NCBI RefSeq assembly: GCF_001194135.2
Contig: NC_068982.1
Span: 69,734,322-69,778,141, forward strand
DNA length: 43,820 nucleotides
Direction: 5' to 3'
Source: Octopus bimaculoides
Lineage: Eukaryota
Numbering within the stretch: the first letter of the stretch is position 1; each line of letters opens with the position of its first letter. This document shows, one piece after another, positions 1 to 23,874 of the stretch. A program made the position numbers and the translations under genes. Under the pieces are notes generated by a model, which saw only the letters and a program-made list of their open reading frames with translations, was not told the DNA's origin and did not search any database.

Positions 1-44
1 TATATATATATATATATATATGAAAATACTCCCCATTGAAAATA

Positions 45-1417: not shown

Positions 1418-1610
1418 TTCAGATTTAAATTGACAAAAAACAACAAGACCGATTACAAAGACACCAATGTATACAATGACATTTTAAAATTATCGCCTAA
1501 TGTATTGACTAATTACGTGGAAATACAAGTGAACAGCGTGTATCCTAAATGTGATAATCGAAAAGACAAAGAAAATGTTGGCCTGAGAGAAATAGCGTTT
1601 CTTGGATTCG
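1418..1610 (+). CDS. Exon F1 (phase 0 to 1): C-terminal half of a discoidin/F5-8 type C-like (galactose-binding-like) beta-sandwich domain
   Basis: ttttcctcctcag acceptor and G|gtaaga donor; open frame FRFKLTKNNK...VLTNYVEIQVNSVYPKCDNRKDKENVGLREIAFLGF. The paralogous exon at 13266-13455 keeps both splice sites and has about 10 synonymous changes. The domain call rests on the T-x-YV-x-I-x-V-x-SVY...N-x-GL-x-EI-x-F-x-G pattern only. Confidence 0.85.
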
Positions 1611-1817
1611 GTAAGAATAGACAGTTGTTTATGTTAATGTAGTTTTATATGTCTAATTAATGTGTTAATTACTCATTATTTTCTTTCAGATCTCATTTGT
1701 GCTTACGTTTGTACGTTTATTACAAATTAAAAAATGAAAAATGGAAACATACATGTTCCCTTAATCAAAACCAAGATGAGTTTGCGTTGAAAAAATTAAT
1801 CAAACTTCCAATTTTGG

Positions 1818-1905
1818 GTAGTGGTTTTCTGATTGCAGCCCTCCCGTGAAATCCGGCTTTGTGCAGCTCCTGGCGAACAGTTTTTGTGGAAACAGAGTTT
1901 CCGAA
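1818..1905 (-). mobile_element. Tc1 transposase fragment
   Basis: NSVSTKTVRQELHKAGFHGRAAIRKPL; matches the Tc1 copies at 5861, 32040 and 37166. Confidence 0.85.
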
Positions 1906-1989
1906 AGTCGGATGCGTGGTTCGAGTCCTGTGGTGGGTTAGAGGAGTAAAGTTAGGCAAGTCGATATACAAAAGATATTAAATACATTT

Positions 1990-4800
1990 AATACAAAAAA
2001 TGTACATATGTTTACGTATAAAAAGGTCCGAATTACACAGAATGGAAATTATATCAGGAATTAAAGGGGTTGAATAAGAGTTTTATGTGTCCAACAGCTG
2101 TTTTGGAGGGCTTGGTAATCCAAAATAATGATTGTAAATTGATTCCATTATCGGATAATACAGCCTCCGTCCTCAAGGAAGAATTCTACATTTGAGGTGT
2201 TGACAGAATGGAGTTTAAAGATGGAATGATTTTGTGGAGAACTAAGTGTATTAGAAAGGGGAGTTGGGGGTATTTAGACAGAGTAGTGAGAGAAGAAAAT
2301 AAATTTCAGGGTTAGGATTAATAATTAGGTTAGTGATAGTAATAGAGGTGGAAAGTGAGAGGAAGAGGGAAGGTTGTTTTAGGTAGTATGTGAATGGTGA
2401 CGTTTGTGTTTATTTGTATGAGGGCTATCGAGTTAAAGGTTGAGATAATGAAAATGGGGATGGCTATTATTTGAAAGTTGACTGGTTTAGTGGTTGAGGG
2501 AGATTAGTAAGGTGTGTAAAGAGGAATGAGAGATGGAGGGGGATAGAGTGGGGATGAGAAGGTGGTCAAAAAGTGATTATTTGTGGGACAAAGGAATTTG
2601 GTTGGTATTGAAGGTGGGGTGTTATAGTAAAGAGAAGTGTATGAAATTGAATAGAGGGGTGTGAATATGGAGGGGGCAGATGTAGATTGGTTAGTTTTCG
2701 AAGGAGTGAGGTACCGTCAAGTAGTTTTTTAAACTGGGGAGGGTGGAGAGGTTAAGAGGGAAGTGGGAAGTAGTTGATTTGAAGAATTTGGAAGTAATTG
2801 GAAATGTGTGTATGAGAAAGACTAAGAGTGGAGGAGTAGTATTTTTTTAAGTAGTAGGTTGTTAGGATGACTTTGTTTTAATTTAAGGTTTTTTGGATAT
2901 GGAAACTTATCTTGGGATTACAAAGAATTAGCGAAGTGCGTGAAAGATGACTAGTAGTACTTGTGTTTGCAAGAATAAATAACCTCTGAGAATCTATTAA
3001 ATAATGAGGAGTTATGAAGGCGAAGAATGGTTAATGATTCTTTTAGACATAAATTTCACTTGCCGATGTTTGCATTGTACGAGGGAACTTCGCTTACTAT
3101 GGACCAGGATAGGGTGTATGGAATATTTTGAGATTTAAAGTTGCGTATATACGTTGCTAAGGAGGTTGATAATTTAGAATTTGGATTGGAGAAAGAGTTC
3201 ATGTGTGCACGGTAGCAGCGCTTGAAATCTACGGTGCCGCCGATATATGTCTTTGTTTGGTGGGAGCGTGGTGTTATAACACGGCACTTGTAGATTACAT
3301 TTTTGCGTAGACGGGAGACTGCAAGAGGGCATAATTGAGAGACGCGACGATTTCAAGTTTTCCTACCGGTTCCATGGTTGGGGTTTACTGCTAGTGAGGT
3401 TGAGCTTCGTTGGTTCATCGTTAGTGGGGGAGAACCTGAAGTGTAATCTGTATTTGTATTAGATTGGGAAATGGTATTGCAGCTAATATTTGTCGTTGCG
3501 TGGGTAGGATTGTGGGATGATGGCTTGAGTCTGGTATAATTTAATTGAGTGGGGTTACTAAGGGTTGTGTTGTTGCTACTATGTGGGCTTACTTGGGGTG
3601 CAGTGTGAGAGTTTAGATGTTCAGAGGACTGGTGTTGGAGTTTGTGTTTGTTCGAGGAGGCGATTATGAATCCAAAATTTGGTGTGGCAGAGTAGGAGAT
3701 TTTCACGGATGATTTGTTAAATATGGGATAGTATTTATGCTGTGATGGAAAGTTAGATTTCAAGATGTTAAAGAAGAGTTTAAGTAGATATTTAAGTTGG
3801 AGAGAGAAAGGTAGTGCGAACCATAAAATTTCCCGTACCTGGCTTTAGAATGTTTAGAGTATATGGCTGAAGTGAGTTGATCAGGAAGGGGTGCTTATAG
3901 TTGTTATAGGCTCGGGTGGCCAGTAGGGCTGCCGGGTGTGATATGTAAGGGTTTTTTAGAGTTGTTGGATTGGTGTAGAGTGAAAGTAATGTCCGTAGAT
4001 TCAAGGTTAGTATTGGGAAAGAGATCTGTTATTTTAGTTTTAAGTTTAGTGCTGGGGTATGATAGTTTTTTCTCGTGGAAGTCGCTTATTTGGTTAAAAA
4101 TTTCTTAGTAGGCAGATAAGTTAGAGATTCAGATAGCTATGACTGTGACTACGCTATTAAAAGTAAGTTTAGGGTGATTAAAGAGGACATTTATATATTG
4201 TAAAGATTGATTGGGTTTATGAAAAGGGTGATATAGATTTGTGTTTAAGTCGAAAGTAACGTCTAAGAAAGTAGTCCCCTTAGTGTCAATTTCGAATGAA
4301 ATTCTCAGGTTATAGTTTTCAAAAAATTTGTGTGGGATTTTCTTGGTGCATTTCACTAACGGTCGAGATGATCCAGTTGATGAAAGGAGTGCATCGTCCC
4401 TGTATAATCCACTGGAGAGGTTGGGGAAGTATTGTTTAATTTGGGAGAGAAGGAATAGGTCAATTAGGTCATGCACCCATGGTTATATCGAAGAAATCCG
4501 TAGATGAGTTTCAGGTTCAATTATTATCCTTAAAATGAATCAGAATCTTCTTTGTAGCCAGGATGATATTGATGTCCGATTCAGAGATGGGACCATATTT
4601 TCGGGTGAAGATTAAGGCCTTATTTAAGAGAATTGGTGGTATAGATGAATAATAATTTGAGATGTCAAAGTGAAGGAAATGATTGTGTTGCTTATCATGA
4701 AGAGAGTGAAACCAAATGATGACATCTCCTGTGCAATTTCAGAGCGGAAGCTTAACGTTAATCCTAACAAGGGGTAGAATACGGTCAATAATGCATATAT
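1990..4800 (-). mobile_element. Penelope-like retroelement, 5'-truncated and decayed (RT, linker, GIY-YIG, CT-rich 3' region)
   Basis: DVIIWFHSL..FLHFDISNYYSSIP..LLNKAL..FFDITMG, YRDD, FLDVTFDLNTNLYHPFHKPN..YINV..NHP (4130-4760). GIY-YIG-like YKCRV...KTYIGGT..FKR.YRAH at about 3200-3300. Confidence 0.9.
2093..2178 (-). ncRNA. Decayed minimal hammerhead ribozyme near the 3' end of the Penelope-like element
   Basis: Minus strand: TTGAGGA-C-GGAGGCT...AGCCCTCC-AAAAC-AGCT-GTT. Two core mutations (C3, G12); helix III is capped by the palindrome AGCT. Confidence 0.55.
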
Positions 4801-4970
4801 TAATTCGACCTAAGTCGGATTTAGTGGCACAAATTAACACAAAAGTTATGATTCAGATATTACCTTAGCCCCCCTTCCCTCTTCCTCCCACCTTCCAACT
4901 CAGACAACATGACTGAAACAAGTAAAATTATAAAAGAGTAAAAGAAAAAAAGAATATATATATGCATGTA

Positions 4971-4997
4971 TACACACACACAGACATACACACACAG

Positions 4998-5076
<79 letters not shown>
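4971..5076 (+). repeat. (CA)n microsatellite
   Basis: Directly visible. Confidence 0.98.
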
Positions 5077-5080
<4 letters not shown>

Positions 5081-5087
5081 CAGTATC

Positions 5088-5285
5088 ATATATCCATCAC
5101 GGCTGATCTTACCAATCGGTTTCGCGCTAGGAATACAACGGAGTGATAGGTAACAATCCGATTATATAACCTTACGCTCATCAGGCGATATGGAAAGGAA
5201 TGTGGTGACTGCACTCTATTATCGGAAGTGAATGGACACATCCAGTTTGCGGTTCCTGTGTAAAAGATGGTGAAACGAAAATGAG
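5088..5285 (-). mobile_element. Dispersed hammerhead-bearing repeat, copy A (pLTR/retrozyme-like)
   Basis: Inverted homologue of about 26955-27162 by eye alignment. Confidence 0.75.
5094..5193 (-). ncRNA. Type I hammerhead ribozyme motif, copy A
   Basis: CTGATGA-GCGTAAGG...CCTAGCGC-GAAA-CC-GATT-GG-TA: intact catalytic core and GUA cleavage triplet. Helix I is shortened relative to copy B. Confidence 0.75.
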
Positions 5286-5588
5286 CAAGGGATTAGATTA
5301 GGAGTTATGTCCCTTGGTTGGATCCGCTGTAAAGCCGGTAAGAGTTATCTTGAAGTGTTTGTGGGAAATGTGTGCATTATTAAGTGTGGTACTCCTGTGG
5401 AGATGAGATATATATTTATTGCCGTAATGAACCAACTCTCTGTTTAAATGCTATGAGATCCCCTTTTCTTTGATTTCTTTCGGAGTAATATTTAAGTGAT
5501 GGCCCTGCAAGGGGACATACATTATGTAAACATATCAATCGTTTCAGCAAACATATTGATAATATTTAAAGATATTGATTCATTTTAG

Positions 5589-5714
5589 CTCCATCAAAAT
5601 GCTTTATAAACCAAAGTGCAATTGAGAATTCTGTGAACGACATACTAATTAATTGTACAGGGGAAAAAGGAATTCTAAGACAGATGAAGAATGGAGATGT
5701 AAAATTCAATTTGT
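5589..5714 (+). CDS. Exon A1 (phase 1 to 1): Cys-containing linker
   Basis: cattttag acceptor and T|gtaagt donor; 126 bp, open: APSKCFINQSAIENSVNDILINCTGEKGILRQMKNGDVKFNL(C). Duplicate at 16322-16447 has the same length and sites. Confidence 0.85.
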
Positions 5715-5860
5715 GTAAGTAAAATGTATCGATATCTTAAAGTTGACTATATATTGATAAAGTAGATGTGGGAAAATGCTTAGAACGGGAGAAAAATATG
5801 GCGTATACCACACATATGCATACAGATAACTGCACAAGCGCACCCTTTCGCATACACATA

Positions 5861-7031
5861 CAGGGGTTGGACAAAATAATGGAAACACCATAGCATCATC
5901 ATTTTGAAATATCTATAAAACCGCCAAATGCTTGATTATTTTTATGTTTTCAAAGAGGTCAAATAATTGGTGCTCGTAAGGCAGGTGCTAGCGTAACGAA
6001 AACAGCCGAAATGTTTGATGTATCAAGAAGTACTGTCACGAAAGTAATGACAGCCTTTGAGAAAGAGGGAAAAACCTCCTCGTCGAAACAAAACTTCGGA
6101 AGAAAACCAAAACTTTGAGACAGGGACCGTCGGACTCTTACGCGAATTGTTAGAAAAGATCACAAAAGTACAATTCCCAAAATTACTGCAGAGCTTAATG
6201 ACCACCTCGAGAACTCAGTTTCCACAAAAACTCTTCGCCGGGAGCTGCACAAAGCCGAATTTTACGTGAGGGCTGCAANNNNNNNNNNNNNNNNNNNNNN
6301 NNNNNNNNNNNNNNNNNNNNNNNNNNNNNNNNNNNNNNNNNNNNNNNNNNNNNNNNNNNNNNNNNNNNNNNNNNNNNNNNNNNNNNNNNNNNNNNNNNNN
6401 NNNNNNNNNNNNNNNNNNNNNNNNNNNNNNNNNNNNNNNNNNNNNNNNNNNNNNNNNNNNNNNNNNNNNNNNNNNNNNNNNNNNNNNNNNNNNNNNNNNN
6501 NNNNNNNNNNNNNNNNNNNNNNNNNNNNNNNNGGGGGGGGGGCTATATCTTGGAAATCCGCCGGGCCCAATGGTTTCCCTTCATGGCAGAATTAATAGTC
6601 AAGACGATTTAAGCATTTTATCTGATGAAATTCATCCTATGATTGCGGAATTGTTTCCGGAGGGAAATGCAATCTTTCAGGCTAATAATGCACCAATTCA
6701 CACAGCTAAAGTTGTTACTGAATGGCCTGAGGAACATTCTAGTGAACTTGAACATCTTATCTGGCCACCAGATCTCAATATTATTGAATATATAAGGTGC
6801 ATTTTAGAAAAACAAGTAAGGAGTCGATATCCTCCACCATCATCACTACAAGAAGTGGAGACTGTTTTAGCTGAAGAATGGACTAAATTCCTTTGGAAAC
6901 AATTCAAACTTTGTACGAGTCCATAACTGGTAGAATTCAAGCTGTAGTTACTGCCAAAGGCGACCCTACTCTATATTAAAATAAATTTGTTTGAAATTTA
7001 AAGATGTTTCCATTATTTTGTCCAACCCCTT
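5861..7031 (+). mobile_element. Full-length Tc1-family transposon (decayed, central assembly gap)
   Basis: TA-CAGGGGTTGGACAAAATAATGGAAACACC ... GATGTTTCCATTATTTTGTCCAACCCCTT-TA termini. Transposase pieces GAISWKSAGP, IFQANNAPIH, DLNIIE; frameshifts present. Confidence 0.95.
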
Positions 7032-7875
7032 TATATAAATGTTAAAAGTAATCTTTGAACAATGCAAGTTAAGAAATAGACAAAATTTATAAGTGATGTC
7101 AATGATGAAAACAAAAATAAAAGAAATTGTCTTACTCAGTATAGCTTGCTTAATAATCCCCAAATATTTCTGATAAGATTCTCAAAAGGTATTGCAATAT
7201 CCTTTTGCGTTGCCGGCAACTCCTTACATATTTTGCCTCAAATCTAACCCGCATTACTGAAAGGATTTTCAAAAACCCCATTTAACGCACTGTAACGCTT
7301 CATTCAATTTATAACACAAACATATATATAAATGCGTACATAATATATACATACATAGATACACACACATGCACACAGATGCACAGACAACATACTCATA
7401 CATATATATATATTATAAATTTACACACACACACACACATATATATCATTATATATATCATTGCATATGCGTATACAAGTAAAGAAAATTACGTATAACT
7501 GACATTCTTTTTCCAGATATAATCTGCTTGTATTTTTTTCCTTTGACAACGCAGACCACCACTACTTGTCTCCAATTCTAAGTTTTTCTTTCCCTAAAAT
7601 AAAACAGATTGTACAAGATTTCTTATTTGCTAATGAATATTTTGACGAGAAATTCAACTTGCATTTTAGGAGCTTACTTAAAAAATTCTGTTATATCTGA
7701 CCTTTAATTCTCAAGATAGGAAACATTTATGCATATATAGTCAAACTTGTAAGATATTTATGTTAATTATAATGAACTGTTCTGATTTGTTATATGATTG
7801 TGTTACTATGTAACTACGAATACACAAACCTTAAAAAAAACCTTGTGTTCTATTTTACTACTTTTTGAATACCAG

Positions 7876-7953
7876 GTGACCAACCAGCGGAAATGGAAAC
7901 AACAACTGATCAATTGAGCACAACCGAAAGTTATAATGTTCCTGCAATATCTA
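7876..7953 (+). CDS. Exon B1 (phase 1 to 1): Thr/Ser-rich stalk
   Basis: ttttgaataccag acceptor and A|gtatgt donor; DQPAEMETTTDQLSTTESYNVPAIS. Duplicate at 20133-20210. Confidence 0.8.
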
Positions 7954-8721
7954 GTATGTATTGCTTGTCTTTTACTTAACGTTGATTTCAAATATAGATA
8001 GATCAGATGTTGCAGGAGCAGAAATACGGATATTGATTTATCAATACTCTAGGTAAGTGCACGATTTCTTGTTCTGCACCATAAATCAGTAGATATTTAT
8101 TTTACAGAACAAAAATAGTCTGCACGAAACCGGAGTATTGATAAATTCACTCCACTGCCTATCTGTTTTCTGCAAGTATCAACTTGCAGCAATTTAAGCG
8201 GAATAATAACGGTATATATATATATCAAAGGTCTCGGAGACATCTGTGAAGGCCGATGTCGCTGTCCCTTCATCCACAGCCAGTAAATTAAAAAAAGTAT
8301 AAAAGTATCTACTAACGTGATCTATGAAAATACATTCAGGAAATATTTTAATGTTCATTTTGATGCGGAAATCTTGAAATTGCTTAATTTCGTTAAAAAA
8401 ATTTATGATGAACTAGATATCTGATTTAAGTTATAGAAAAATTACGATTAGCGTTAGTTACGATATAATAAATACCAAACACAACTTGTCATTTTGATTT
8501 CTTCTCTCTCTGACTGTTTCCACCTTTCCACCATTAACATTGGTTAACTCACTGTTTTACCGTCTTCCTCTCCGCCTACAACAGATATCTGCGATGAAAA
8601 TGAGATTAATTTCCTTCGGACACACACTGTGACAATGGGATTAATATTATAGATTGGCATGAGATGGACAACGATTTCTTTGTTGAACACCCAAGCAGTC
8701 TCTTATAGTAATATTACAGAG

Positions 8722-8866
8722 TGGAATAAGTACTTCTTACGTTCTGATCGACTTTGCCTTTCATTCTTTCTGGGTCGATAAAATAAGTACCAGTTGAACG
8801 CTGGGGTCGATGTAATCGACTTACCCCTTTCCCGAGACTGCTTGTCTTGTACCAAAGTTTGAAATC
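8722..8866 (+). mobile_element. SINE (core plus tail type A), specific to gene module 2
   Basis: GACTTTGCCTTTCATTCTTTCTGGGTCGATAAAATAAGTACCAG core. Flanked by aatattacagag / aatattatagag TSD-like repeats and absent from the homologous intron at about 20815. Confidence 0.85.
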
Positions 8867-9642
8867 AATATTATAGAGCGGAGGTGGTGACCTGTCGGGA
8901 CATGTTTTTCTTAAAACTAAGACAGCATATTCTACACATGAGTATAATAAGAATGTGCTTTCCTCACAACGTGAAAAACAAAAACGATTGCAACAGCAGC
9001 AGCAACAACAATGTCATAAAATGAATATAAATATATTTCTCGAAATATTTCACGGATCACACTAGAAAACAGAAATCCTATATATTTCTGTGAAAAGAAA
9101 ACAAAAGACAAACAAACCAAAAAAACAATTACAATATAGATCGATGGTCTTGTAGAAAAAGGGAAAATGACACGTTTTAGCGATATAATTGACATATAAT
9201 CGATGTGTGTGTGTGGGTGTTTATATATATATATATNNNNNNNNNNNNNNNNNNNNNNNNNNNNNNNNNNNNNNNNNNNNNNNNNNNNNNNNNNNNNNNN
9301 NNNNNNNNNNNNNNNNNNNNNNNNNNNNNNNNNNNNNNNNNNNNNNNNNNNNNNNNNNNNNNNNNNNNNNNNNNNNNNNNNNNNNNNNNNNNNNNNNNNN
9401 NNNNNNNNNNNNNNNNNNNNNNNNNNNNNNNNNNNNNNNNNNNNNNNNNNNNNNNNNNNNNNNNNNNNNNNNNNNNNNNNNNNNNNNNNNNNNNNNNNNN
9501 NNNNNNNNNNNNNNNNNNNNNNNNNNNNNNNNNNNNNNNNNNNNNNNNNNNNNNNNNNNNNNNNNNNNNNNNNNNNNNNNNNNNNNNNNNNNNNNNNNNN
9601 NNNNNNNNNNNNNNNNNNNNNNNNNNNNNNNNNNNNNNNNNN

Positions 9643-9688
<46 letters not shown>

Positions 9689-11299
9689 GTGGTGTCAATT
9701 AGACCGAGAGGTTTCAGGTAATGCTGAGTAAGTGCTATGGATAGACCATAGTTAAGCTCCAAGTTCGCATAATCACCGACTCCTTATTCGTATATGTATG
9801 TATATATACATTCTGGCGTTAGCAAAAATTTTTGAGAACATATTCTCCGTGGTAAAGCAATTTGGCGTCTTCTTCTAGCATATTAGGAATCCACCTTGGT
9901 GGCTATTCCTCTTATTTTTATATGTTATATATGTATATTACCGACCACACATACTTATCAACCGATAAGTATGAATCGAGCCGGGGAGTGGGTGGGCTGG
10001 AATTGTCCCCTAAGAGCTATACCACAGCGAATAATAGATACTGGGACGATGTGCTTTGCAGACGACACAAATTGAAAATCATTTTCATATTTCTTAATCA
10101 GAATATTTATCTCACTAAGTATAATTTTTTTATATACACATACACATAGAAAACACACACATACTTATATACACGTGAAAAGATTCAGTTATATATTGAT
10201 ATAAATACAGAGGTTGGCATAAGAAGCTATATAGTGGTTGGAATGGTAATGTTTTGTTTGGTAAGAATATAGAAATGCTACATAAATTTTTGGAGAAAAC
10301 ATTTCGAACATTTATGTATTGTGGCACGACTTACGCTGACAGTTTACTGATTTCTGCTATTTACACGTGTTTTTTGTTTTTGCTTTTTCATAAATTCCGT
10401 ATTTAATGTCAGATAAGACCCACTTTTTTTCACAAAAAATCCGTCTCAAAAAAATGAATAAAAACCAACATGCTCCAGCATGCGTAGTCGAGCCGATTTT
10501 TATATGTTTTAATACAGTCAAAACTTATGTTTCTGAATAAGAGCTGCAGATATTGGGGTTTGTTTAATATGCCCATGCATTTTTATGCCATCAAATACGG
10601 TACATAGGCTGTTAATGAATTATCTTCCAATANNNNNNNNNNNNNNNNNNNNNNNNNNNNNNNNNNNNNNNNNNNNNNNNNNNNNNNNNNNNNNNNNNNN
10701 NNNNNNNNNNNNNNNNNNNNNNNNNNNNNNNNNNNNNNNNNNNNNNNNNNNNNNNNNNNNNNNNNNNNNNNNNNNNNNNNNNNNNNNNNNNNNNNNNNNN
10801 NNNNNNNNNNNNNNNNNNNNNNNNNNNNNNNNNNNNNNNNNNNNNNNNNNNNNNNNNNNNNNNNNNNNNNNNNNNNNNNNNNNNNNNNNNNNNNNNNNNN
10901 NNNNNNNNNNNNNNNNNNNNNNNNNNNNNNNNNNNNNNNNNNNNNNNNNNNNNNNNNNNNNNNNNNNNNNNNNNNNNNNNNNNNNNNNNNNNNNNNNNNN
11001 NNNNNNNNNNNNNNNNNNNNNNNNNNNNNNNNNNNNNNNNNNNNNNNNNNNNNNNNNNNNNNNNNNNNNNNNNNNNNNNNNNNNNNNNNNNNNNNNNNNN
11101 NNNNNNNNNNNNNNNNNNNNNNNNNNNNNNNNNNNNNNNNNNNNNNNNNNNNNNNNNNNNNNNNNNNNNNNNNNNNNNNNNNNNNNNNNNNNNNNNNNNN
11201 NNNNNNNNNNNNNNNNNNNNNNNNNNNNNNNNNNNNNNNNNATTTATGTATGTATGTATGTATGTATAACCCTTCCTGCTTATCGATATTTTTGACCAG

Positions 11300-11431: not shown

Positions 11432-12403
11432 GTAAGTTAACTTTTATCATAATTCATTTAATGTCATCCCCTCGGCAATATCGTGGTGAATAGGTAGTAA
11501 TAATTGAGATAAAACCATGTACATTCGTAACTCTTAACAAAAATAAGAGCAAAAGAATAACCTAAGAATATTGAGCATCCACAAGTAATGCAACGGAAAC
11601 GTTATAGATATGAAAAATAATCAATCCAAACTAATTCTATAGATTTGTACAGAATGTTTTTTTTTTAATCTCTTTCCTGCAAAGTAAAAAAATATATAAG
11701 CCTACAGTTATATGTTTGAAAGTTATTTCCTTTTATCAACGTTGTTACTATTATTGAGAAATTCTTAGTCACTATATTTCCATTAAGAAATTATATTAAT
11801 GTATTTTTTTACAATAATAATTCAAATTATTCTTTCATATTTCTTTANNNNNNNNNNNNNNNNNNNNNNNNNNNNNNNNNNNNNNNNNNNNNNNNNNNNN
11901 NNNNNNNNNNNNNNNNNNNNNNNNNNNNNNNNNNNNNNNNNNNNNNNNNNNNNNNNNNNNNNNNNNNNNNNNNNNNNNNNNNNNNNNNNNNNNNNNNNNN
12001 NNNNNNNNNNNNNNNNNNNNNNNNNNNNNNNNNNNNNNNNNNNNNNNNNNNNNNNNNNNNNNNNNNNNNNNNNNNNNNNNNNNNNNNNNNNNNNNNNNNN
12101 NNNNNNNNNNNNNNNNNNNNNNNNNNNNNNNNNNNNNNNNNNNNNNNNNNNNNNNNNNNNNNNNNNNNNNNNNNNNNNNNNNNNNNNNNNNNNNNNNNNN
12201 NNNNNNNNNNNNNNNNNNNNNNNNNNNNNNNNNNNNNNNNNNNNNNNNNNNNNNNNNNNNNNNNNNNNNNNNNNNNNNNNNNNNNNNNNNNNNNNNNNNN
12301 NNNNNNNNNNNNNNNNNNNNNNNNNNNNNNNNNTATATATATATATATATATATATACAGACACACAGAAACAGACACACACACACACACACACACACAT
12401 ATA

Positions 12404-12737: not shown

Positions 12738-12789
12738 CATAGCGGCGTACGTACACTTTGGTCTCTTATATGTAAGTAAATATATATCT

Positions 12790-13165: not shown

Positions 13166-13265
13166 AATAATTTTTAACATACAACGAGCTGCATATTCGT
13201 TCTGCCTATTCTATTGTTACAACACCTGACTTTGGATGTCAAATTTGTTTTATTTTCCTTCTCAG

Positions 13266-13455
13266 TTCGGGTTTAAATTGACCCAAAACAACAAGACCAA
13301 TCACTATCAAACTGATGTTTACAACGACATTTTAGTATTATCTAATGTATTGACTGATTACGTGGAAATACAAGTGAAAAGCATGTATCCCAAATGTGAT
13401 GATCGACCAGAAAGTGAAAGTGTTGGTTTGCGAGAAATATCGTTCCTTGGATTCG
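13266..13455 (+). CDS. Exon F2 (phase 0 to 1): paralogue of F1
   Basis: ttttccttctcag acceptor and G|gtaaga donor; FGFKLTQNNK...VLTDYVEIQVKSMYPKCDDRPESESVGLREISFLGF. By hand count, 33 substitutions plus one 3-bp gap versus F1. Confidence 0.85.
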
Positions 13456-13479
13456 GTAAGAATAGACAATTATCTTTTA

Positions 13480-14367: not shown

Positions 14368-14755
14368 ATGGCTGCCCCATCGTTATCGAGTATGGCCATT
14401 GCACGAAGCTTAACTTAACGGTGCTGTGATCGAATGTGACTTTTTAGCCCAGCCAAAGATCTACAATGTCTTGCACAGAGTTGGTGTCCAAAACCTTTAC
14501 TGGCAATAGCTGGCTGTTGTAATTGGGCTCCATGTACCTTTTCGTGTCGTTTAAGTCCTCCTGCAGAATCACACTCCCTTCCACATGCCCGACAGACATG
14601 ATTAGTATGGTGTGTAGCATCATCACCAGCGGCCTGGTAGTCAATCATCGGTCTTGCTTTATGACTACTAAGATGACTCATGAGTCCAGCTTTACTGAGG
14701 CACGGTCTTGCACAGACACTGCATGTCAGTGTCATAGGAAGACCCTTACATATAA
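14368..14755 (-). mobile_element. 3' end of an RTE-type non-LTR retrotransposon with C2H2 zinc-finger repeats
   Basis: CSVCARPCLSKAGLMSHLSSH, CRACGRECDSAGGLKRHEKVH and a third degenerate finger LCARHCRSLAGLKSHIRSQH, then stop, short UTR and (TATG)n. Confidence 0.75.
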
Positions 14756-14798
14756 ATACATAATACATACATACATACATACATACATGCATACATAC

Positions 14799-15148
14799 CA
14801 AAGAAAAAGAAGATATCTATGGACAACTGCTTCGAAACCTCAAGCTTCTATATCCGGAATATGAATTCATATTCATACCAATAATAATTGGAGCACTAGG
14901 TTTTGTTAGTAAATGCTTAAAGGAGAATCTGGATAAACTGGGATTTTCAGAAAGAGAAATCGACCGGCTAATTCGTACATTGCAAGTGCAATCTGTGAGT
15001 GGAACAGTAAAAATATGCAAGACTTTTCTCAAGTTCCAAATGTGAATTTGCATGTGTTAAATACATCCCAAAGACGGAGCCTTGTATCTTTGTTAGAAAC
15101 TGGCTCCCTCCTAAGTGGAAGATTTATAATAATTAAAAAACAGAAGAG
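14799..15148 (+). mobile_element. 3' end of an R4/Dong-like non-LTR element with restriction-like endonuclease
   Basis: KEDIYGQLLRNLKLLYPEYEFIFIPIIIGALGFVSKCLKENLDKLG...LQVQSVSGTVKICKTFLKFQM* (stop at 15043-15045). Confidence 0.8.
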
Positions 15149-16011
15149 ACATACATACATACGTTTACGCGCATACAAACACCCACCTACCCACCTATAC
15201 ANNNNNNNNNNNNNNNNNNNNNNNNNNNNNNNNNNNNNNNNNNNNNNNNNNNNNNNNNNNNNNNNNNNNNNNNNNNNNNNNNNNNNNNNNNNNNNNNNNN
15301 NNNNNNNNNNNNNNNNNNNNNNNNNNNNNNNNNNNNNNNNNNNNNNNNNNNNNNNNNNNNNNNNTATATATATATATATATATATTATACATATACATCT
15401 ATATATGTATATACATATATGTATGCATGTATATAAATATGCATATATATATACACATCTATAATTATCTATCCATCTATCTATCTAGTTATCGATCTAT
15501 ATGTCTATTTATATCTATATATATATGTGTGTGTGTATATACATATAAATATGTGTGTGCGCGAGAGAGTGAGAGAGTAAGAGAGAGACAGAGAGAGAGA
15601 GAAGGGAGAGAGAGCGGATGAAACATGTATTTGTAGTTTTCCAAAAAAAAAAAAAGCACTTAGTTTACTGAACTTCATCCTCGATTTCAATCAGTCAACC
15701 TGTCTTTGTGCCTCCTCGTTTCATTGACTCACTCTTTTATATCAGTTTTCTCTCACCCTCTCTGCTTTCCTCTTGCCCATTCTCTCTCTGTGTCTCTCTC
15801 TCTTTCTTTATCTCTTTCTTTTTCTCCATACGTCTCCTTCACTCTCTCCGAGATATAATATTTTCACCTCCATATCTCAGTTTATTTCGTTCACGTTTCT
15901 TTCGGAATGACTACTTAACTGATGATCTTTACACCTGCGATAAAATTCCCGAATATTCTTTGAAGCGAAAATGACCTGAGTTGTTAAGCTGGTACAATGA
16001 TGCATTCCTAG

Positions 16012-16053
<42 letters not shown>

Positions 16054-16321
16054 CAGTACACACATGTAGGCTAAACAGCGCCTGCTTAACACAACTACCT
16101 GAATCTTAGGTGCTCATTCACACAATATATTAGGTGTTTTCATGCTATTTCTTGCCGTAATAAACCAACTTTCTGTTTAAATGCTTTGAAAAATCCTTTT
16201 TTCTTTGATTTCTTTCGAGGTAATATTCAAGTGTACACTGCAAGAGTACATAAATTATGTAAACATATCGATCGTTTTAGTAAACATATTGATAATATTT
16301 AAAGATATTGATTCATTTTAG

Positions 16322-16447
16322 CTCCATCAATATGCTTTATAAACCAAAGTCCAATTACGAATTCTGTGAACGACATACTAATTAATTGTACAGGGAAAAA
16401 AGGAATTCTAGGACAGATGAAGAATAGAGATGTAAAATTTTATTTGT
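16322..16447 (+). CDS. Exon A2 (phase 1 to 1)
   Basis: cattttag acceptor and T|gtaagt donor; APSICFINQSPITNSVNDILINCTGKKGILGQMKNRDVKFYL(C). Confidence 0.85.
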
Positions 16448-17109
16448 GTAAGTAAAATGTATCGATATCTTAAAGTTGACTATATATTGATAAAGTAGAT
16501 GAGGGAAAATGCTTAGAACGGAAGAAAAATATGGCGTATATCACACATAGACATACAGATACACGCACGGACGCACTCTTTCACAAACACATATATAAAT
16601 ATTAAACGTAATCGTTGTATAATGCAAGTGGAGATATAGGCAAAATTTAAAGCATTTTCAAACATCTCTCATGCGCATTGTATAATGTTTCTTGCAAATT
16701 ACAACATACACACACACATACACACACACATACACACATACACATACACACTAACAAATGTATATATATANNNNNNNNNNNNNNNNNNNNNNNNNNNNNN
16801 NNNNNNNNNNNNNNNNNNNNNNNNNNNNNNNNNNNNNNNNNNNNNNNNNNNNNNNNNNNNNNNNNNNNNNNNNNNNNNNNNNNNNNNNNNNNNNNNNNNN
16901 NNNNNNNNNNNNNNNNNNNNNNNNNNNNNNNNNNNNNNNNNNNNNNNNNNNNNNNNNNNNNNNNNNNNNNNNNNNNNNNNNNNNNNNNNNNNNNNNNNNN
17001 NNNNNNNNNNNNNNNNNNNNNNNNNNNNNNNATATATATGAGAATTTACGAAACAAACAACAGACGAGGACAGCTGGTGTAAACAACAAAAGGATGTATT
17101 AGTTTATAT

Positions 17110-19450
17110 ATATATGAAGAAAAGTGGGGGGAGAAGGTTAGCACCTAATCTAACCCTAGTACTAGGGTCATGGAATGTTCCTGGGTGCGGTACAAATAAG
17201 GGAAAAAGGAGAGAGAGAGGGATTGTGATGATGAGGAGAAGGATGGATGTGCTTGCACTGAGCGAAACTAAGATGAAAGGTAAGGGAGAGTGCCAGTTTG
17301 GTGATGTGACTGGACGAGTTTCGGGAGTGAGAGGGGGGAGGTCTCGTGAAGGAGTGGCATGGTGAGTGAGCGTGAAACGGGAGATAGGCGATGTGAAGGA
17401 GTGGGAAGCCTTTAGAGAGGCAGTAATAATATGTACCTCTGAGGTAAGTGGTACACGAGTGGTTGGAATGGGTGTCAGGAAAGGTAGTGAGTGGTGGAAT
17501 GAGCGGTGGCAGAGAAGAAAAGAGCTTTTGAAGACTGGTTGCTGGAAAGGGATGGAGTGGCTTATGGTCGCTACAGAGAAGTGAAGAGGAGAGTGAAGAG
17601 AGTGGTGAGTGTGGCGAGATGGGAGGCGAGTGAGAGGTACAAAGGGTAAAGTAGGTGATTATGGAAGTGAAGAAAAGGTGAAGGGTGTCAATGGAAATTT
17701 GTTGAAAGGAAGTGAGGATGTGCAAAGGAGATGAACAGAGTATTTTAGTGAGGATGATAGAGAGATAATTATGGTGGCTGTATGAGGAGAGAGGAGAATA
17801 CCTGTTGTTGGGAAATAGAATTATGGTGCAATTGGAAGGGAGGAGTTGAGGAAATTCTTGCGGTAGATGGCAAACCGAAAGGTGCCAGGTATAGATGGGT
17901 GTACAGTGGAATGCCTAAAGAAAGGAAGAGTGACAGTGGTTGAATGGTTAGTGAGGCTTATGAATGTTTGTTATATGGCTGGAAGAGTACCAGAGGACTG
18001 GTGCAGTGCCTGTATAGTGCCACTGTACAAGGGGAAAGGGGATAAATGTGAGTGTGGAAATTTTAGGGGTATAAGTCTGTTGCATGTGGTTAGTAAACTG
18101 TATGGGAGAATTCTGATTGTAAGGGTGAGGAACCAGACAGAGAGTGTACTAGGGAAGGAACAGTGCGGTTTTAGGAGTGTGCAGATCAGATATGTGTTGT
18201 AAGACAGATGTATGAGAAGTTTTTGGCAAAAGGGAGGGATGTGTATTGGGCCTTTATGGACCTAGAGAAGGTATATGACCGTGTGGATAGGGATGCAATG
18301 TGGCAGGTGTTTCGGTTGTATGGAGTAGATGGTAGATTGTTGAGAGCTGTACAGAGTTTCTATACAGAAAGTAGGGCGTGCGTTAGGGTGGGTGGTGAAG
18401 TGAGTAGTTTGATATGAAGGTGGGGTTAAGATGGTTGTGTGCTGTCTCCGTGGCTGTTTAATCTATACATGGATGGTGTGGTGAGAGAGGTGAATGCTAC
18501 AACTTTTGGTAGGGGAGCCCAAATGGTGACAGAAAATAGAGAGAACTGGCAGGTGAGTCAGTTGTTATTTGCTGATGATACAGCACTGGTGGCGGATTCG
18601 GAAGAGCAACTGAGGAGACTGGTGGTAGAGTTTGGAAGAGTGTGTGAGAGAAGGAAACTGAAAGTGAATGTAGCTAAGAGTAAGGTGATGCGATGTTCGA
18701 AAGATGGAAGGGCTGGTAGGATGGATGTGAGTATAAATGGTGAGATGTTAGAGGTGGTGAGTGCTTTTAAGTATCTAGGATCACATGTGACGGCGGATGG
18801 GGGGCGGGGCGGTTATAGCAGCAGGATATAGGGTGAGGGAGGGGAGTAAGATACTTGGAGTTGTGAAAGGTATGCTGAGAGATAAAAGGTTGAGTATTAA
18901 AGCGAAAGGAGGTGTGTATGGGGGTGTGATTGCGCCTACAATGTTATATGGTGCAGAGACGTGGGGTCTGAGAGAAGCGGAAAGGAAGCGACTAGGTGTG
19001 TGCGAGATGAGATGTTTGAGGGCTATGGTTGGTGTGACACGGATGGACAGGTGAGGAATGAGGAGGTGGAAGGAGAGCAGGAATAAGAGAAAATCTAACA
19101 ACCAGAATGGATAGACGAATGTTGAGATGGTTTGGCCACATGGAAAGGCTGGATAAGAAGCGGATAGTAAGGAGGGTGATTAAAGAAGTAGTGGTAGGCA
19201 GCAGAACCAGAGGCAGACCTCAGTTTGTGTGGATGGATGGCGTGAGGAAAGCTTTGGTGGTTAGAGGTGCTGGAGTGAGAGAGGCAAGAGAGTTTATTAA
19301 TGATAGGAAAGCTTGGAGAGTGTTTATGGACGGATGAGTGAATTGGTGTTGTTGAAAGGAGTACAGAACCATGATGCGGTGCGGGTAAATTAGCATATGC
19401 TATCGGGCCCCGCTGCTGATGTCGGGGGTTGCAAATAATAAATAACAAAT
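17110..19450 (+). mobile_element. RTE-clade LINE, decayed, with most of the APE domain deleted
   Basis: LGSWNV..MDVLALSETKMKGKGE (APE start); VPEDWCSACIVPLYKGKGDKCEC.NFRGISLL, AFMDLEKVYDRV, LLFADD, FKYLG, LRWFGHMER, RGRP..W.D; (AAAT)-like tail at about 19435-19450. Confidence 0.95.
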
Positions 19451-19699
19451 CGGAGCGTACCAGGGAACCACAATCTTTTGCACAGATGTGACAAATGCAG
19501 GTGTCCCTTGCAGAAGATCTACAAAGAACGTACGTTGACACATGCTTTCATTCCATCATGGAATTTTTCATTGAAATGTTTTACCTTAGTAGGGATGCTA
19601 ATAGACATGTGAAAAAATCTAGTGAAATCCTATGCCTGAAACTTTTTAAAGTGATGAAGGCCTTGCACTACGTATATACATAGATGCATACATGCATGT

Positions 19700-19785
19700 A
19701 TGCATGCCTACATACATACATACATACATACATACATAATACATACATACATACATACATACATACATACATACATACATACATA
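19700..19785 (+). repeat. (TACA)n microsatellite
   Basis: Directly visible. Confidence 0.97.
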
Positions 19786-20132
19786 ATTTGTGATAGAGAA
19801 GAGAAACTGTACAGTAATGGAAATCAACTGCCCAGCGGATGTTAACATAAATATATATATATTTACATACAAATATGGCATTGTATATGACTTCTGATTT
19901 GCTAGTGAATATTTTGACGAAGAAATTCGACTTGCATTTTAGGAACTTAAAAAATTCTTTGATATTTTACTTTTAATTCTCAAGGTAGCAAACATTTAAG
20001 CATATATTGTCAAACTAGTAAGATATTTATGTTGATTATAATGCCTTGTTCTGATTTGTTATATGGTGATGTTACTATATAACTACGAATACACAAACCT
20101 TGTGTTCTGTTTTACGACTTTTTGAATACCAG

Positions 20133-20210
20133 GTGATCAACCGGCGCAAATGAAAACAACAACTGATCATCCGAGCACAACCGAAAGTTACAGTTTTCCT
20201 ACAATATCTG
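20133..20210 (+). CDS. Exon B2 (phase 1 to 1): stalk
   Basis: ttttgaataccag acceptor and G|gtatgt donor; DQPAQMKTTTDHPSTTESYSFPTIS. Confidence 0.8.
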
Positions 20211-21265
20211 GTATGTATTGCTTGTCTTTTACTTAACGTTGACTCAAATATAGACACAAAAGTAAATGTTAAAGTAGAAATACGGATATTAATTCATCAA
20301 TACTCTAAGTGAGTGCATGATTTCTTGTTCCGCACTATGAATCAGTAGATATTTATATTACGGAATAAAAATATTCTCCATGAAACCGGAATATTGATAA
20401 ATTCACTCCACTGCTAATATGTTTCCTGCAAGTATCAACTTGCAACAGTTTAAGCGTAATATTAGCGGTAACAATATCAGAGGTTGCGGAGATATCTCTA
20501 AAGGCCAAACTTAATGCCCCTTTATCCACAGCCAGTAATTAAAAAAAAAATAAAGAAAAGTATAAAAGAAATCTACAAACTTGATCTGTGAAAATACATT
20601 CGAGAAATGTTTTAATTTTCATTTTGATGCATAAATCTTCCTGAAATTGTTTAATTTCATTAAAGATTTTTATGATAATGAACTAGAGAATTGATTCAAA
20701 TTACAGAAATATTAAGATGTAAATAATTGATTAACATTAATTACGATATCATAAATATTTAACACAACGTGTTTTTTGTTTCGTTTTCTTGTTAAACTCC
20801 CATGCAGTCTCTTATAGTCTTATTGGGGAGCGGAGGTGATGACCAGTCGGGACTTGTTTCTCTTAAAATTAAGATAATACAATCTGTATTAGTATAACAT
20901 GAACAACAACGACAACAACTGCAGCAACATCATAAACCAAGCAAATAAACAAAAGAAAATAGAAATCCTATATATTTCTGTAAATGAAACAATAACAAAA
21001 TATTCGATGGTCTTGTAGGATACACTTTATTATTAAAGGAAAGAAAACATGTCTGAATGACCGAAATGATATATGCATGTACACATACTTTACTTACATT
21101 AGCTTGCTTATGACAACCCATCAAAGGTGATGACAGTCGATCCAAGACATTCATCCTCCTCCGCTTTCATCATATTGTTTCTCATGGGAGTAGACGTAGC
21201 TGACAGGAACGATACGAGATAGGCAGTCCTGTGATATTGAGGGCACTAAACAACAGCCGCAGGGG

Positions 21266-21432
21266 GTTGATAGTGAAAAGAAGATTTTTTTATTGAGCTA
21301 ACCCTATAGTATTATTCTACGTGTTCGTTCACACTTTACCGTTAGCTTGGAAGCGTGGAGGAGATGGAGCGATTGAGAGGAAGAGAGGGAATGTGAGAGA
21401 GGAGTAGGTGCAGCTTATATGGCTTTCCTATA
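21266..21432 (-). repeat. LTR-like repeat (TATAA, CT-rich tract, AATAAA, ..CAAC); may continue at 22573-22757 after the inserted DNA element
   Basis: Near-identical to 24570-24715. On the minus strand, TGTGACG at 22757 is a possible LTR start. No TSD found. Confidence 0.45.
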
Positions 21433-22572
21433 AGTAGGTTATCTCCCTTGGCTAGGCGGCGCTCCATGTAGATAATTAAACTTCCGGAGGCTAACCCACG
21501 CCATTGTTATTGTTTTACGTCTTATCATGGATATAAAGCAGCTTGATGATTCAGCTATCGAAGTACTTACTGTGCCTGAGTTAAAGAAATATTTAAGATT
21601 ATATGGACAGTATGTTACTGGAAGAAAGGTGGACTTGACTGAAAGGTTGAAAGGAATAAAAATTCTGTCAATGAAGAATGTCAACAAAGTAAATTCATCG
21701 GACGATAAGTCTGAAGTATCGGACGATACTTCAGACAGGAATAAGCAGAAGCTTATATCTCCTCTCGGTGANNNNNNNNNNNNNNNNNNNNNNNNNNNNN
21801 NNNNNNNNNNNNNNNNNNNNNNNNNNNNNNNNNNNNNNNNNNNNNNNNNNNNNNNNNNNNNNNNNNNNNNNNNNNNNNNNNNNNNNNNNNNNNNNNNNNN
21901 NNNNNNNNNNNNNNNNNNNNNNNNNNNNNNNNNNNNNNNNNNNNNNNNGAATTTCACAGATAATGACATAATTACCTCGTGCTACGGATGAAAGCAAAGC
22001 AACAGTTAAGGAGTGGTATATTTTACCACGACAGACACGTACACAGCATCGAATACCACGATGTGAGTGAAAGCTGCTTTCACTGTATTGTCCGGTGTCT
22101 GGTAATCCCTTCGATACCGACATCAAACCAAAAAAAGAATCCTGACCACAGAGTGTGGGTAATTATGTCAAATGTCACTGGCAACGTGCATTCAGCTGAT
22201 TGCAACTGTTAAAACAAGTCACTGAGCATGCGTACATGTCATACGGGAGAGTTCCAATCAGGGGTGGATAACACCTTATAGGAAAGCCCTATAGGGCTAA
22301 CATGGAGCAAACACATCGTTAGACAATCAATAAAGATCGTTACATATGTAACAATGGAATAAAGTATTACTAAGTTATGCTCATGTCTTTTTCTCTTATT
22401 ATTATTGCTGCGTTCTTTGTATCATGTCATAACCCACCATCGAATACGGGCAACATGTGTGTAGAAGCGACGATGGAAGCTTAACATGAATAATCCCATA
22501 TGATATTTGCATATCATATAGGATTATTATTTTTGTAAAATAATCAATAGCTGTATGCAAGGAGTTACCACC
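21433..22572 (+). mobile_element. Internally deleted DNA transposon encoding a SAP plus SWIM-type protein N-terminus (ISL2EU/Kolobok-like accessory ORF)
   Basis: ATG at 21527; LTVPELKKYLRLYGQYVTGRKVDLTERL (SAP); VWVIMSNVTGNVHSADCNC followed by frameshifted ACVHV (SWIM). Imperfect TIRs; TTCCTATA/TTTCTATA flanks. Confidence 0.65.
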
Positions 22573-23004
22573 TTTCTATAATATATATGTTTAGAGTAAA
22601 CTCGAGTGAAGTATTAAGAAAACTAGTATTACATTGTAAATTGAGAGTTACTTCCCATCGTGTACAACTCTCCACTAAAACTACAATCAAGAGAAGATTA
22701 CTTAATAGCAGATGAGAAATTGAATAGCCATGTAAAACCATTTGTGATAACGTCACACACATAAACACACATAGACACATATACATACATACGTATTACA
22801 CACACACACACACACACACACACGTAAGTATGTATGTATTTATTTATACGGACAGCGACCTATTATTGAAAGAAATTATTCATCAATGCGATTTTAAGCA
22901 ATCTTTCTTTTTGTTCCCGACTAACGCGAGGTTGTATGCGCGCGCGTATGCGTGTGTGTGCTTGTGCACGCGCGCGTGTGTATATGTGAGTGTGTGTGCA
23001 TTTG

Positions 23005-23081
<77 letters not shown>

Positions 23082-23608
23082 TATATATATGTACACACAC
23101 ACATGCACACACACACACACGTATTAGTTTCAAATTTGGTTACAAGGTCAGAAATTTTTTTCAGGGTACGTGGGTAAGTCAATATGTGCATACATATCTC
23201 ACTGTTGCTTTCGTTTTAGCCCCGGGATAGGTCTGATCGAACAGGCCTTTCATAAGATGTCGAATAATTCGAGATAGTAACGTAATTTTATTTATCTGTG
23301 ACTATCTTAACACATCTGTTTGTCTTTTATTGAAAGAGTAAGATGTGACTTGAGGAAAATTTGAGGATTATTCTTAGCTGACTGAGTACTGCCCCTTTCC
23401 CATTGATTATACAATGTTTATCATAAATGATGTCAGGAAACAGACATATCGATCAAAATCGTGTTAAGCTTTTCAGCACAGCAAACCAGTATTTCTCTGT
23501 TCTATGGCGTTCTTCTCCAAAACCCAAGTTAGATAGAACATTTATATAATTCATTCTTTATAAAAGGGTATTTCAATTTATTTGTTTCAAATTTTATATT
23601 CCCGTCAG

Positions 23609-23874
23609 GATTGAATGGATCCAAATGCATCTGTCCCTGTAAAGGACAAATAACAGAGACTCAAGCCGAATTTAAGAAACGAATGGAAAACACTCGAAAA
23701 GAACTTACAGTGAAAAGGAACGCAACTTCACAATACATAGCTACGAAAATCAGTGCTCCAGATGAGCGAGTGTCTTCTCAGACTATGGGCGCATTAGCAA
23801 TTATCATGCTTTCAGTAATTGCTGGATTAATTATCATTCCAGACATCTTATATTTCTTGAAGAAAATTTTTTAG
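23609..23874 (+). CDS. Terminal exon: CxC, juxtamembrane helix, single TM, KKIF tail
   Basis: ttttatattcccgtcag acceptor, phase 1, which fits exon B2. GLNGSKCICPCKG...RKELTVKRNATSQYIATKISAPDERVSSQTMGALAIIMLSVIAGLIIIPDILYFLKKIF*. ATTAAA about 80 bp downstream. Confidence 0.9.

Follow-up and report, generated by a model that had tools for sequence, protein, structure and literature searches.

We analysed a 43.8-kb stretch of the Octopus bimaculoides genome (43,820 nucleotides of contig NC_068982.1, positions 69,734,322 to 69,778,141 of the forward strand; this whole stretch is called the window below) that carries eight short coding exons of a membrane glycoprotein. The window is a gap-rich eukaryotic scaffold with 37% G+C, 14 runs of N and many microsatellites. 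We consider it likely, though not assured, that the eight exons belong to one gene, which would encode a type I protein of ~600 amino acids (aa) with the exon order SP-D1-E1-F1-A1-B1-D2-[E2]-F2-A2-B2-TM. Here SP is the signal-peptide exon, TM the last coding exon with the transmembrane segment, A is used as a cassette, and the brackets mark an exon predicted to lie in an assembly gap. On the best reading, the window holds the 3' two-thirds of this gene, and each module consists of a Cys-containing segment D, a discoidin-like (DUF7402/CBM32-type) sandwich encoded by E and F, an optional cassette A with Cys and N-glycan sites, and a Thr/Ser-rich stalk B. The exons and the gap, with lengths in nucleotides (nt), are the following:

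1418-1610, plus strand: F1, 193 nt, phase 0 to 1; C-terminal half of discoidin-like domain 1
5589-5714, plus strand: A1, 126 nt, phase 1 to 1; 42-aa Cys-containing cassette with NQS and NCT sequons
7876-7953, plus strand: B1, 78 nt, phase 1 to 1; Thr/Ser-rich stalk segment
11300-11431, plus strand: D (D2), 132 nt, phase 1 to 1; 'KCPQL...EYLK' segment, spliced in frame to B1
11848-12333, plus strand: assembly gap; predicted site of E2 (~224 nt, N-terminal half of discoidin-like domain 2)
13266-13455, plus strand: F2, 190 nt, phase 0 to 1; C-terminal half of discoidin-like domain 2
16322-16447, plus strand: A2, 126 nt, phase 1 to 1; cassette exon
20133-20210, plus strand: B2, 78 nt, phase 1 to 1; Thr/Ser-rich stalk segment
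23609-23874, plus strand: TM exon, last coding exon, 266 nt, phase 1 to stop; TAG at 23872-23874

All eight exons have an AG acceptor with a pyrimidine tract and a GTAAG or GTATG donor, and the chains F1-A1-B1-D and F2-A2-B2-TM each translate without a stop. A preliminary description of the window had proposed eight GT-AG exons chained in phase, a Cys created at the A/B junction of both modules, a set of N-glycosylation sequons and a missing exon between D and F2, and these proposals were borne out. The eight exons were located with compatible splice borders and phases and match RefSeq at 100%; the A/B junction (T joined to GT) makes a Cys in both copies; the sequons NKT, NQS, NCT, NNS, NGS and NAT were all found; and, since D ends in phase 1 and F2 begins in phase 0, an unseen exon of 3n+2 nt must lie between them. 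Within the repeated block, D runs from phase 1 to 1, E from 1 to 0 (224 nt, as seen in Octopus vulgaris), F from 0 to 1, and A and B each from 1 to 1. The SP donor and the TM-exon acceptor are also in phase 1, and the duplicated block D-E-F-A-B starts and ends in phase 1. In module 1, the D segment comes directly after the signal peptide. In keeping with use as a cassette, exon A is absent from P0005 (RefSeq isoform X2), from P0001 and from the annotated O. vulgaris fragment P0002, and A2 is skipped in XP_014770379.1. An extra micro-exon after B (7998-8053, with a twin at ~20255-20310, 'VEIRILIYQYS') has good AG and GT sites in both copies and was rejected: the orthologous O. vulgaris stretch has an in-frame TGA, the stretch is not conserved in a paralogue, its end phase of 2 misfits the TM exon, and it occurs in no database protein.

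The gene had been described as hidden, which does not hold; it is already in RefSeq and UniProt, as split and truncated models. Inside the exons, the window is 100% identical to XP_014770372.1 (LOC106869236) and XP_014770379.1 (LOC106869241; UniProt A0A0L8HQF1), both listed for O. bimaculoides as 'uncharacterized protein'. LOC106869236 covers F1, A1, B1 and D2. LOC106869241 covers part of F2, B2 and the TM exon, and its protein begins at an internal Met of F2, without a signal peptide. The parts upstream of the window are supplied by XP_014770372.1, in which the signal peptide, D1 ('KCPQL...EYLK') and E1 are followed by F1 (residues 139-202). The B1-to-D2 junction, PAIS/TKCPQL, is present in both RefSeq models of LOC106869236, namely the older XP_014770372.1, which ends in 'EYLKVRV' and a stop, and the newer isoform X2, whose end is read-through into the intron 3' of D2. 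A literature search on the locus and protein accessions found no paper.

The orthologous locus of O. vulgaris is free of gaps (OX597815.1, ~74.73-74.78 Mb; referred to as L001, with P0002 as its annotated fragment) and has the following exons:

L001 1094-1145: SP exon
L001 6877-7008: D exon
L001 8317-8540: E exon
L001 9974-10166: F exon
L001 18681-18806: A exon
L001 20540-20617: B exon
L001 26882-26953: B', an extra B-like exon ('SEPTGRENGQLSNTSNSSTFTTP')
L001 35293-35567: TM exon

Without B', these exons assemble into an intact single-module open reading frame (ORF) of 359 aa, SP-D-E-F-A-B-TM, and the next O. vulgaris gene downstream, the paralogue P0004, has the same exon plan. Both resemble the window gene in exon plan, phases and the tail KISAPDER.SSQTMG followed by a transmembrane segment, and non-coding O. 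vulgaris sequence is ~90% identical to the orthologous parts of the window; they differ from the window gene in having one module per gene. B' is used instead of A and B in the annotated P0002, and the window showed no counterpart of it. The B2-TM intron spans ~3.4 kb in the window (with a gap at 21772-21948) versus ~14.7 kb in O. vulgaris.

Direct joining of D2 to F2 gives a translation that is out of frame and stops after 'VRV'. The end of the older RefSeq model is the exact product of this join, so this model already extended from module 1 to F2, with its frame broken by the absence of E2. Window positions 11763-11845 align to L001 8229-8311, the 83 nt immediately upstream of the O. vulgaris E exon, and the microsatellite at 12334-12429 matches L001 8599-8693, right after that exon, as well as other places. 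By collinearity with the gap-free locus, all gaps of the range fall in introns of the model except 11848-12333, and E2 is predicted to lie wholly inside this gap. LOC106869236 and LOC106869241 are most likely one gene, split by an assembly gap that hides one exon.

Comparison of the window with itself revealed three collinear duplicated blocks at an offset of 10.7-12.3 kb: 1341-1626 versus 13186-13471 (80% identity), 5413-5860 versus 16146-16593 (90%) and 7608-8507 versus 19880-20789 (80%). The blocks, 80-90% identical, include introns, in agreement with the early observation that flanking introns are duplicated too. The sequence after B1 tracks the post-B intron for ~1 kb, to ~8953 and again at 9059-9112, and joins copy 2 at about 8950-9110. 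Copy 2 opens with two landmarks:

9000-9236, plus strand: start of duplication copy 2; 81% identical to L001 1-226, which lies ~0.9 kb before the SP exon of O. vulgaris
10219-10260, plus strand: relic of the copy-2 signal-peptide exon, from alignment with the O. vulgaris SP exon (L001 1094-1145)

The relic lies in a stretch (10140-10287) that aligns to the O. vulgaris SP exon region. Its ATG has become ATA and a 10-nt deletion has left it 42 nt long, in phase 0 and out of frame with D2; the donor GTAAGA is kept. A short alternative start in the relic (ATGGTAATGTTTTGTTTG) was discarded: its phase-0 end does not fit the frame of D2, and translation meets a stop. A tblastn search for a relic of the TM exon after B1 found none in the sequenced parts of 7954-11299. 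A tandem duplication of ~12 kb thus appears to have copied the upstream region, the SP exon and D-E-F-A-B.

These features suggest how two modules could have come to be read as one protein. The duplicated unit would have begun ~1 kb before the SP exon and ended ~1 kb past B. With the SP donor, D acceptor, B donor and TM acceptor all in phase 1, transcripts from the upstream promoter would splice B1 to D2 in frame. The copied SP exon, as a first exon, would have had no acceptor with which to compete in splicing and has since decayed, and copy 1 would never have had a TM exon of its own. One gene is favoured because the SP exon of copy 2 is dead, no TM relic follows B1, the block is in phase 1 at both ends, and the 'VRV' end of the older model is explained. 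On the same grounds, of the two origins that the preliminary description had left side by side, in-frame duplication of a module is preferred to two tandem paralogues. It had also pointed to the gaps between 9.2 and 11.2 kb as a place where a second TM exon would mean two genes. The sequenced parts contain none, and collinearity with O. vulgaris assigns these gaps to the SP-D intron and to the region 5' of the SP exon. A TM exon would not be expected at either place, although the gaps could still hold one.

Several points weigh against a single gene with two modules. The sequence of E2 is missing, so that the two-module ORF stays predicted across 11848-12333. The gaps at 9237-9642 and 10633-11241 could hide a small exon, and an unrecognised alternative first exon for module 2 is possible. 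The RefSeq junctions are model output and thus indirect evidence for transcripts that join the modules. RefSeq keeps two loci, and the end of isoform X2 after D2 could reflect real transcripts ending there. Lastly, the ratio of non-synonymous to synonymous divergence (dN/dS) between the species is ~1.8 over the orthologous exons, not significantly different from 1 (Fisher p = 0.12-0.18), and recent constraint on the ectodomain is therefore weak.

Some of these points would suit two tandem paralogues, an arrangement that we regard as unlikely. Gene 1 (SP-D1-E1-F1-A1-B1, perhaps with D2 as its terminal exon) would then encode a secreted or truncated protein, and gene 2 (D2-E2-F2-A2-B2-TM) would have its own promoter and a hidden or unrecognised first exon. 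A second promoter was copied, since the duplicated unit extended to sequence 5' of the SP exon; the first of the two RefSeq loci has an isoform, X2, that ends just 3' of D2; and single-module genes of the family stand in tandem in O. vulgaris. However, the copied SP exon lacks an ATG and, through its deletion of 10 nt, no longer matches the frame of D2, and no TM relic lies 3' of B1. The RefSeq protein of 'gene 2' starts inside F2 and has no signal peptide, while the old model of 'gene 1' already continues into F2. Moreover, purifying selection acts on D2 and F2, and for this their product must obtain a signal peptide in some way.

The constraint on copy 2 was assessed by placing the observed number of differences at random in 40,000 trials. 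D2, F2, A2 and B2 all stayed open in 2.8% of the trials, all eight splice dinucleotides survived in 9%, and open frames and splice dinucleotides were retained together in 0.23%. D2 compared with O. vulgaris D gave a dN/dS of 0.14, and F1 and F2 share 73% aa identity with a dN/dS of 0.42. Selection has thus retained the copy-2 exons, and because copy 2 has no usable first exon, its constraint fits use as internal exons. Between the species, the ectodomain exons gave a dN/dS of 2.1, which is likewise not significant. Positive selection is not claimed, as the dN/dS values above 1 are not significant (Fisher p = 0.12-0.18); the claim goes only so far as an ectodomain that appears to evolve fast between species.

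These data also bear on the idea that the duplicate is used in part, which seems improbable. Module 2 D-E-F-A or module 1 B would be skipped or removed by nonsense-mediated decay, and the product would have a single module (e.g., SP-D1-E1-F1-A1-B2-TM) while the rest decays. O. vulgaris has one module of exactly that mosaic type, skipping of B1 to A2 would keep the frame as the module borders are all in phase 1, A is already a cassette exon, and dN/dS between the species is ~1 or higher. Yet after ~20% nucleotide divergence the four sequenced copy-2 exons and B1 are open and their splice sites intact (the 0.23% of random trials above), D2 has a dN/dS of 0.14, and the RefSeq models contain the B1-to-D2 junction.

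That the copies are an assembly artefact, either haplotypes left uncollapsed or sequence wrongly joined in a draft scaffold rich in gaps, would fit the fourteen N gaps in 43.8 kb and the single-copy state in O. vulgaris and is hardly credible, since the copies differ by 10-20%, far above allelic divergence, each has a different nearest O. vulgaris relative from segment to segment, copy 2 alone has a reverse-transcriptase insertion and its SP exon has decayed, and the RefSeq model from a later, 192-Mb chromosome-scale assembly retains the B1-to-D2 junction.

Returning to one gene with two modules, we examined its history by comparison with O. vulgaris. By blastn, F1 is 91% and F2 77% identical to O. 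vulgaris (999-1820 versus the F region, 91%), B1 79% and B2 90% (19853-21271, 90%), and A1 and A2 are each ~88-89% identical to O. vulgaris and 90% to each other. Three-way site patterns among copy 1, copy 2 and O. vulgaris, in which each count gives the changes private to one branch, were as follows:

F segment: copy 1, 6; copy 2, 42; O. vulgaris, 14
A segment: copy 1, 15; copy 2, 22; O. vulgaris, 20
B segment: copy 1, 96; copy 2, 27; O. vulgaris, 40

Judged by these patterns, the single module of O. vulgaris looks like a mosaic whose F segment is nearest to copy 1 and whose B segment is nearest to copy 2, which argues that the duplication predates the split of the two species. Synonymous divergence (dS) is ~0.23-0.38 between the copies versus ~0.06 between orthologues; under a rough molecular clock, the duplication would be several times older than the O. 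bimaculoides/O. vulgaris split. A dS of 0.04 between A1 and A2 suggests gene conversion in the A region. As the simplest account, the O. vulgaris lineage would have lost B1 to A2 by unequal crossing-over near exon A.

We further characterised the encoded protein. That it is a type I membrane glycoprotein, as first described, is supported by a transmembrane helix and a four-residue tail in the last exon and, in XP_014770372.1, by a putative signal peptide upstream of the window. XP_014770372.1 begins with MRGNIMVAILMLYLKIEA, followed directly by KCPQL; by eye, this start follows the n-h-c pattern typical of signal peptides, and residues 3-19 are predicted to form a helix. Among paralogues, conservation is highest in the terminal exon. 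Its translation contains CxCxC, a stretch of charged residues (ETQAEFKKRMENTRKELTV), a sequon (NAT), KISAPDERVSSQTMG, which is strictly conserved, a hydrophobic transmembrane helix of 23 residues and the tail KKIF. After the transmembrane segment ALAIIMLSVIAGLIIIPDILYFL come KKIF, whose basic residues lie on the cytoplasmic side, and the stop codon, and the Kyte-Doolittle 19-residue mean peaks at 2.6 on the O. vulgaris orthologue, whose transmembrane segment is identical to that of the window. The KKXX di-lysine motif is a pattern for retrieval of type I membrane proteins to the endoplasmic reticulum. The O. bimaculoides tail -KKIF (23860-23874) fits it; O. vulgaris has -KKMFDTL and the paralogue -KNISERF, and the match is not conserved and may be due to chance.

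Pfam recognised the domain in XP_014770372.1, which contains E1 and F1: DUF7402 scored 43.9 bits (cut-off 27, E = 3e-11, residues 83-198), F5_F8_type_C was marginal (28.3 bits versus a cut-off of 28.2) and F5_F8_type_C_2 fell below its cut-off (26.0 versus 27.8 bits). The single exons F1, F2, D and the TM exon gave nothing meaningful in Pfam. The domain is therefore made of E plus F, because Pfam recognises E and F joined and not F alone. Exon E encodes its N-terminal half and, for module 1, lies upstream of the window. The early description of the modules as discoidin-like thus stands at the level of the DUF7402/F5/8 type C profile and the beta-sandwich model, whereas the F exon, to which it had been attached, is only the C-terminal half of the domain.

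Structure prediction pointed to the same fold. Over residues 60-205, the AlphaFold2 model, built from a 33-sequence alignment, is nearly all beta and forms a beta-sandwich, with a predicted local distance difference test score above 90 for most of this region and dips in two loops; confidence was low for the D, A and B parts. Thus E and F do model together as a beta-sandwich, for which the preliminary description had looked to F, and a Foldseek search against the Protein Data Bank (PDB) returned discoidin and CBM32 folds. Its top 50 matches comprised CBM32, bacterial F5/8 type C, APC10/DOC, muskelin discoidin and F-lectin structures, with a probability of 1.0 and a TM-score relative to the target of up to 0.75. 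By sequence, the best PDB match reached an E value of only ~0.4, to CBM32-type chitosan-binding modules. In eukaryotic FA58C domains, a disulfide joins the N- and C-terminal ends of the domain. Cys residues flank the octopus domain, in NCS...REC before it and in ...FLGFAPSKC after it; the latter Cys lies in cassette A and is absent from A-skipped isoforms.

A HMMER scan of 1.84 billion representative sequences yielded 178 relatives, each matching the discoidin-like domain only. The highest-scoring relatives are long and match in 3-6 stretches each. One is named as an LmbE-family deacetylase, which makes a prokaryotic origin of these relatives probable; the matches also include small predicted proteins with animal-type features. 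Horizontal transfer from bacteria was considered on account of these prokaryotic-looking relatives and set aside: predicted proteins of animal type, one of Argonauta hians and others with kringle-like or TSP1-like sequence by eye, contain a domain of this type as well. DUF7402 (PF24135), F5/8 type C (PF00754) and CBM32 modules of the galactose-binding-domain-like superfamily, which is characterised by a compact jelly-roll sandwich of ~130-150 residues and by loops at one end that bind carbohydrates, lipids or other ligands, resemble the octopus domain in profile and fold; CBM32-type modules also share its motif D..(K)ATEW...G.GAWI.. In contrast to the long relatives with several matched stretches, the octopus protein with this domain is a small type I membrane protein, and two exons encode the domain. 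The A. hians hypothetical protein GAB1601953.1 (P0082) and similar predicted, apparently metazoan proteins have one such domain, with 39% identity over ~100 residues. They share with the octopus protein a putative signal peptide and a C-terminal transmembrane segment, and differ in having TSP1-like repeats (WSxW...C motifs, by eye) in place of A and B and a longer cytoplasmic tail, and in lacking the D segment and the KISAPDER tail motif.

The terminal exon was searched separately. Its profile retrieved eight predicted proteins from 5.8 billion, four of them distant and non-octopus-like, which keep the pattern '...L.V...TS.Y..KISAPDER.SS..G-TM'. The C-terminal pattern CxC...L.V...SAPD.R.SS..G-TM, at first ascribed to many molluscan membrane proteins, does therefore exist outside this gene, in four non-octopus-like proteins rather than many. 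One of the four distant copies of the KISAPDER-TM tail is encoded on ENA contig ERZ26168041 (L003), where an ORF with a Methyltransf_FA (PF12248) domain precedes the tail exon by ~2.6 kb in the same orientation (L003 517-1011 and 3592-3909). This contig appears eukaryote-like, and the tail exon may accompany other ectodomains.

Vertebrate DDR1/2, DCBLD1/2, neuropilins and CASPR are single-pass membrane proteins that display extracellular domains of the F5/8 type C fold, together with extra CUB, LCCL, MAM, laminin-G or kinase domains and sizeable cytoplasmic regions. Compared with these, the octopus protein has a tail of four residues and no detectable orthology. A cytoplasmic tail this short would suit an adhesion or recognition (lectin-like) molecule or a co-receptor rather than a signalling receptor. 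From its sequence features, the product would likely be a glycosylated surface protein that presents two putative carbohydrate- or ligand-binding sandwiches on mucin-like stalks. A broader view, which we put forward tentatively and consider rather doubtful, is that the locus belongs to a fast-evolving octopus family of lectin-like surface proteins in which unequal crossing-over changed the number of modules (two versus one mosaic), with the phase-1 terminal exon serving as a portable membrane-anchor cassette shared with unrelated invertebrate ectodomains.

The introns and flanks contain further elements. In the A2-B2 intron, directly after a gap (16771-17031), 17042-19334 (plus strand) is a degenerate reverse transcriptase of the non-long-terminal-repeat type with frameshifted ORFs and an RVT_1 match at 18430-18828 (E = 4e-15); it has no match in copy 1 or in the O. 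vulgaris locus and is probably a later insertion private to copy 2. A second reverse-transcriptase element, with a weak RVT_1 match and frameshifted ORFs, occupies 34204-35803 (minus strand), the most G+C-rich part of the window (0.43). The G-rich stretch 1999-5950 in the F1-A1 intron has a GC skew of ~+0.58 and long minus-strand ORFs (2254-4482) with no Pfam match; it is 89.5% identical to L001 15152-19048 and therefore an old shared insertion or element. Three Tc1-like DNA transposon copies were found at 5858-6830, 32037-32735 (minus strand) and 37168-38248 (minus strand), the last with HTH_Tnp_Tc3_2 and DDE_3 matches at 37168-38058; the copy of the A1-B1 intron has a counterpart at the orthologous site in O. 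vulgaris.

Between two gaps in the F2-A2 intron, 14418-14816 (minus strand) is an open frame of 133 aa that encodes three zinc-finger motifs of the C2H2 type and probably belongs to a transposable element; a plus-strand ORF (14764-15042) adjoins it. Two related plus-strand segments, 36296-37223 and 40850-42220, are 81-88% identical and contain long Ser/Thr/Asp/Glu-rich frames ('...STSDDEELPPKLKEDSKHSD...'), in which a 21-nt tandem repeat at 41907-42049 encodes '...PSTDIDG' 6.8 times; these segments may represent exons of a further duplicated gene, located downstream, or may be no more than repeats. At the other end, 309-632 (minus strand) is an open frame ('...WVAEFRKGTESLEDDLRSD...') with no Pfam match, which we take to resemble the N-terminal helix-turn-helix region of mariner-type transposases. 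Window positions 1-998 have no counterpart in the O. vulgaris E-F intron.

For annotation, these results mean that two 'uncharacterized' RefSeq loci likely merge into one whose product has two discoidin-like modules, a signal peptide and a membrane anchor. The gene belongs to a known domain superfamily and is biologically ordinary; what is new is the probable merger, the dead SP exon that records the origin of the repeat, and the one-module mosaic of O. vulgaris. The locus would provide an example of domain-repeat gain in which a duplication carried the first exon along, a block with the same phase at both ends allowed read-through splicing in frame, and the redundant first exon decayed, while the sister species would later have reverted to one module. 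Should the protein turn out to bind glycans as a surface receptor, its family could be relevant to innate immunity or cell recognition in cephalopods.

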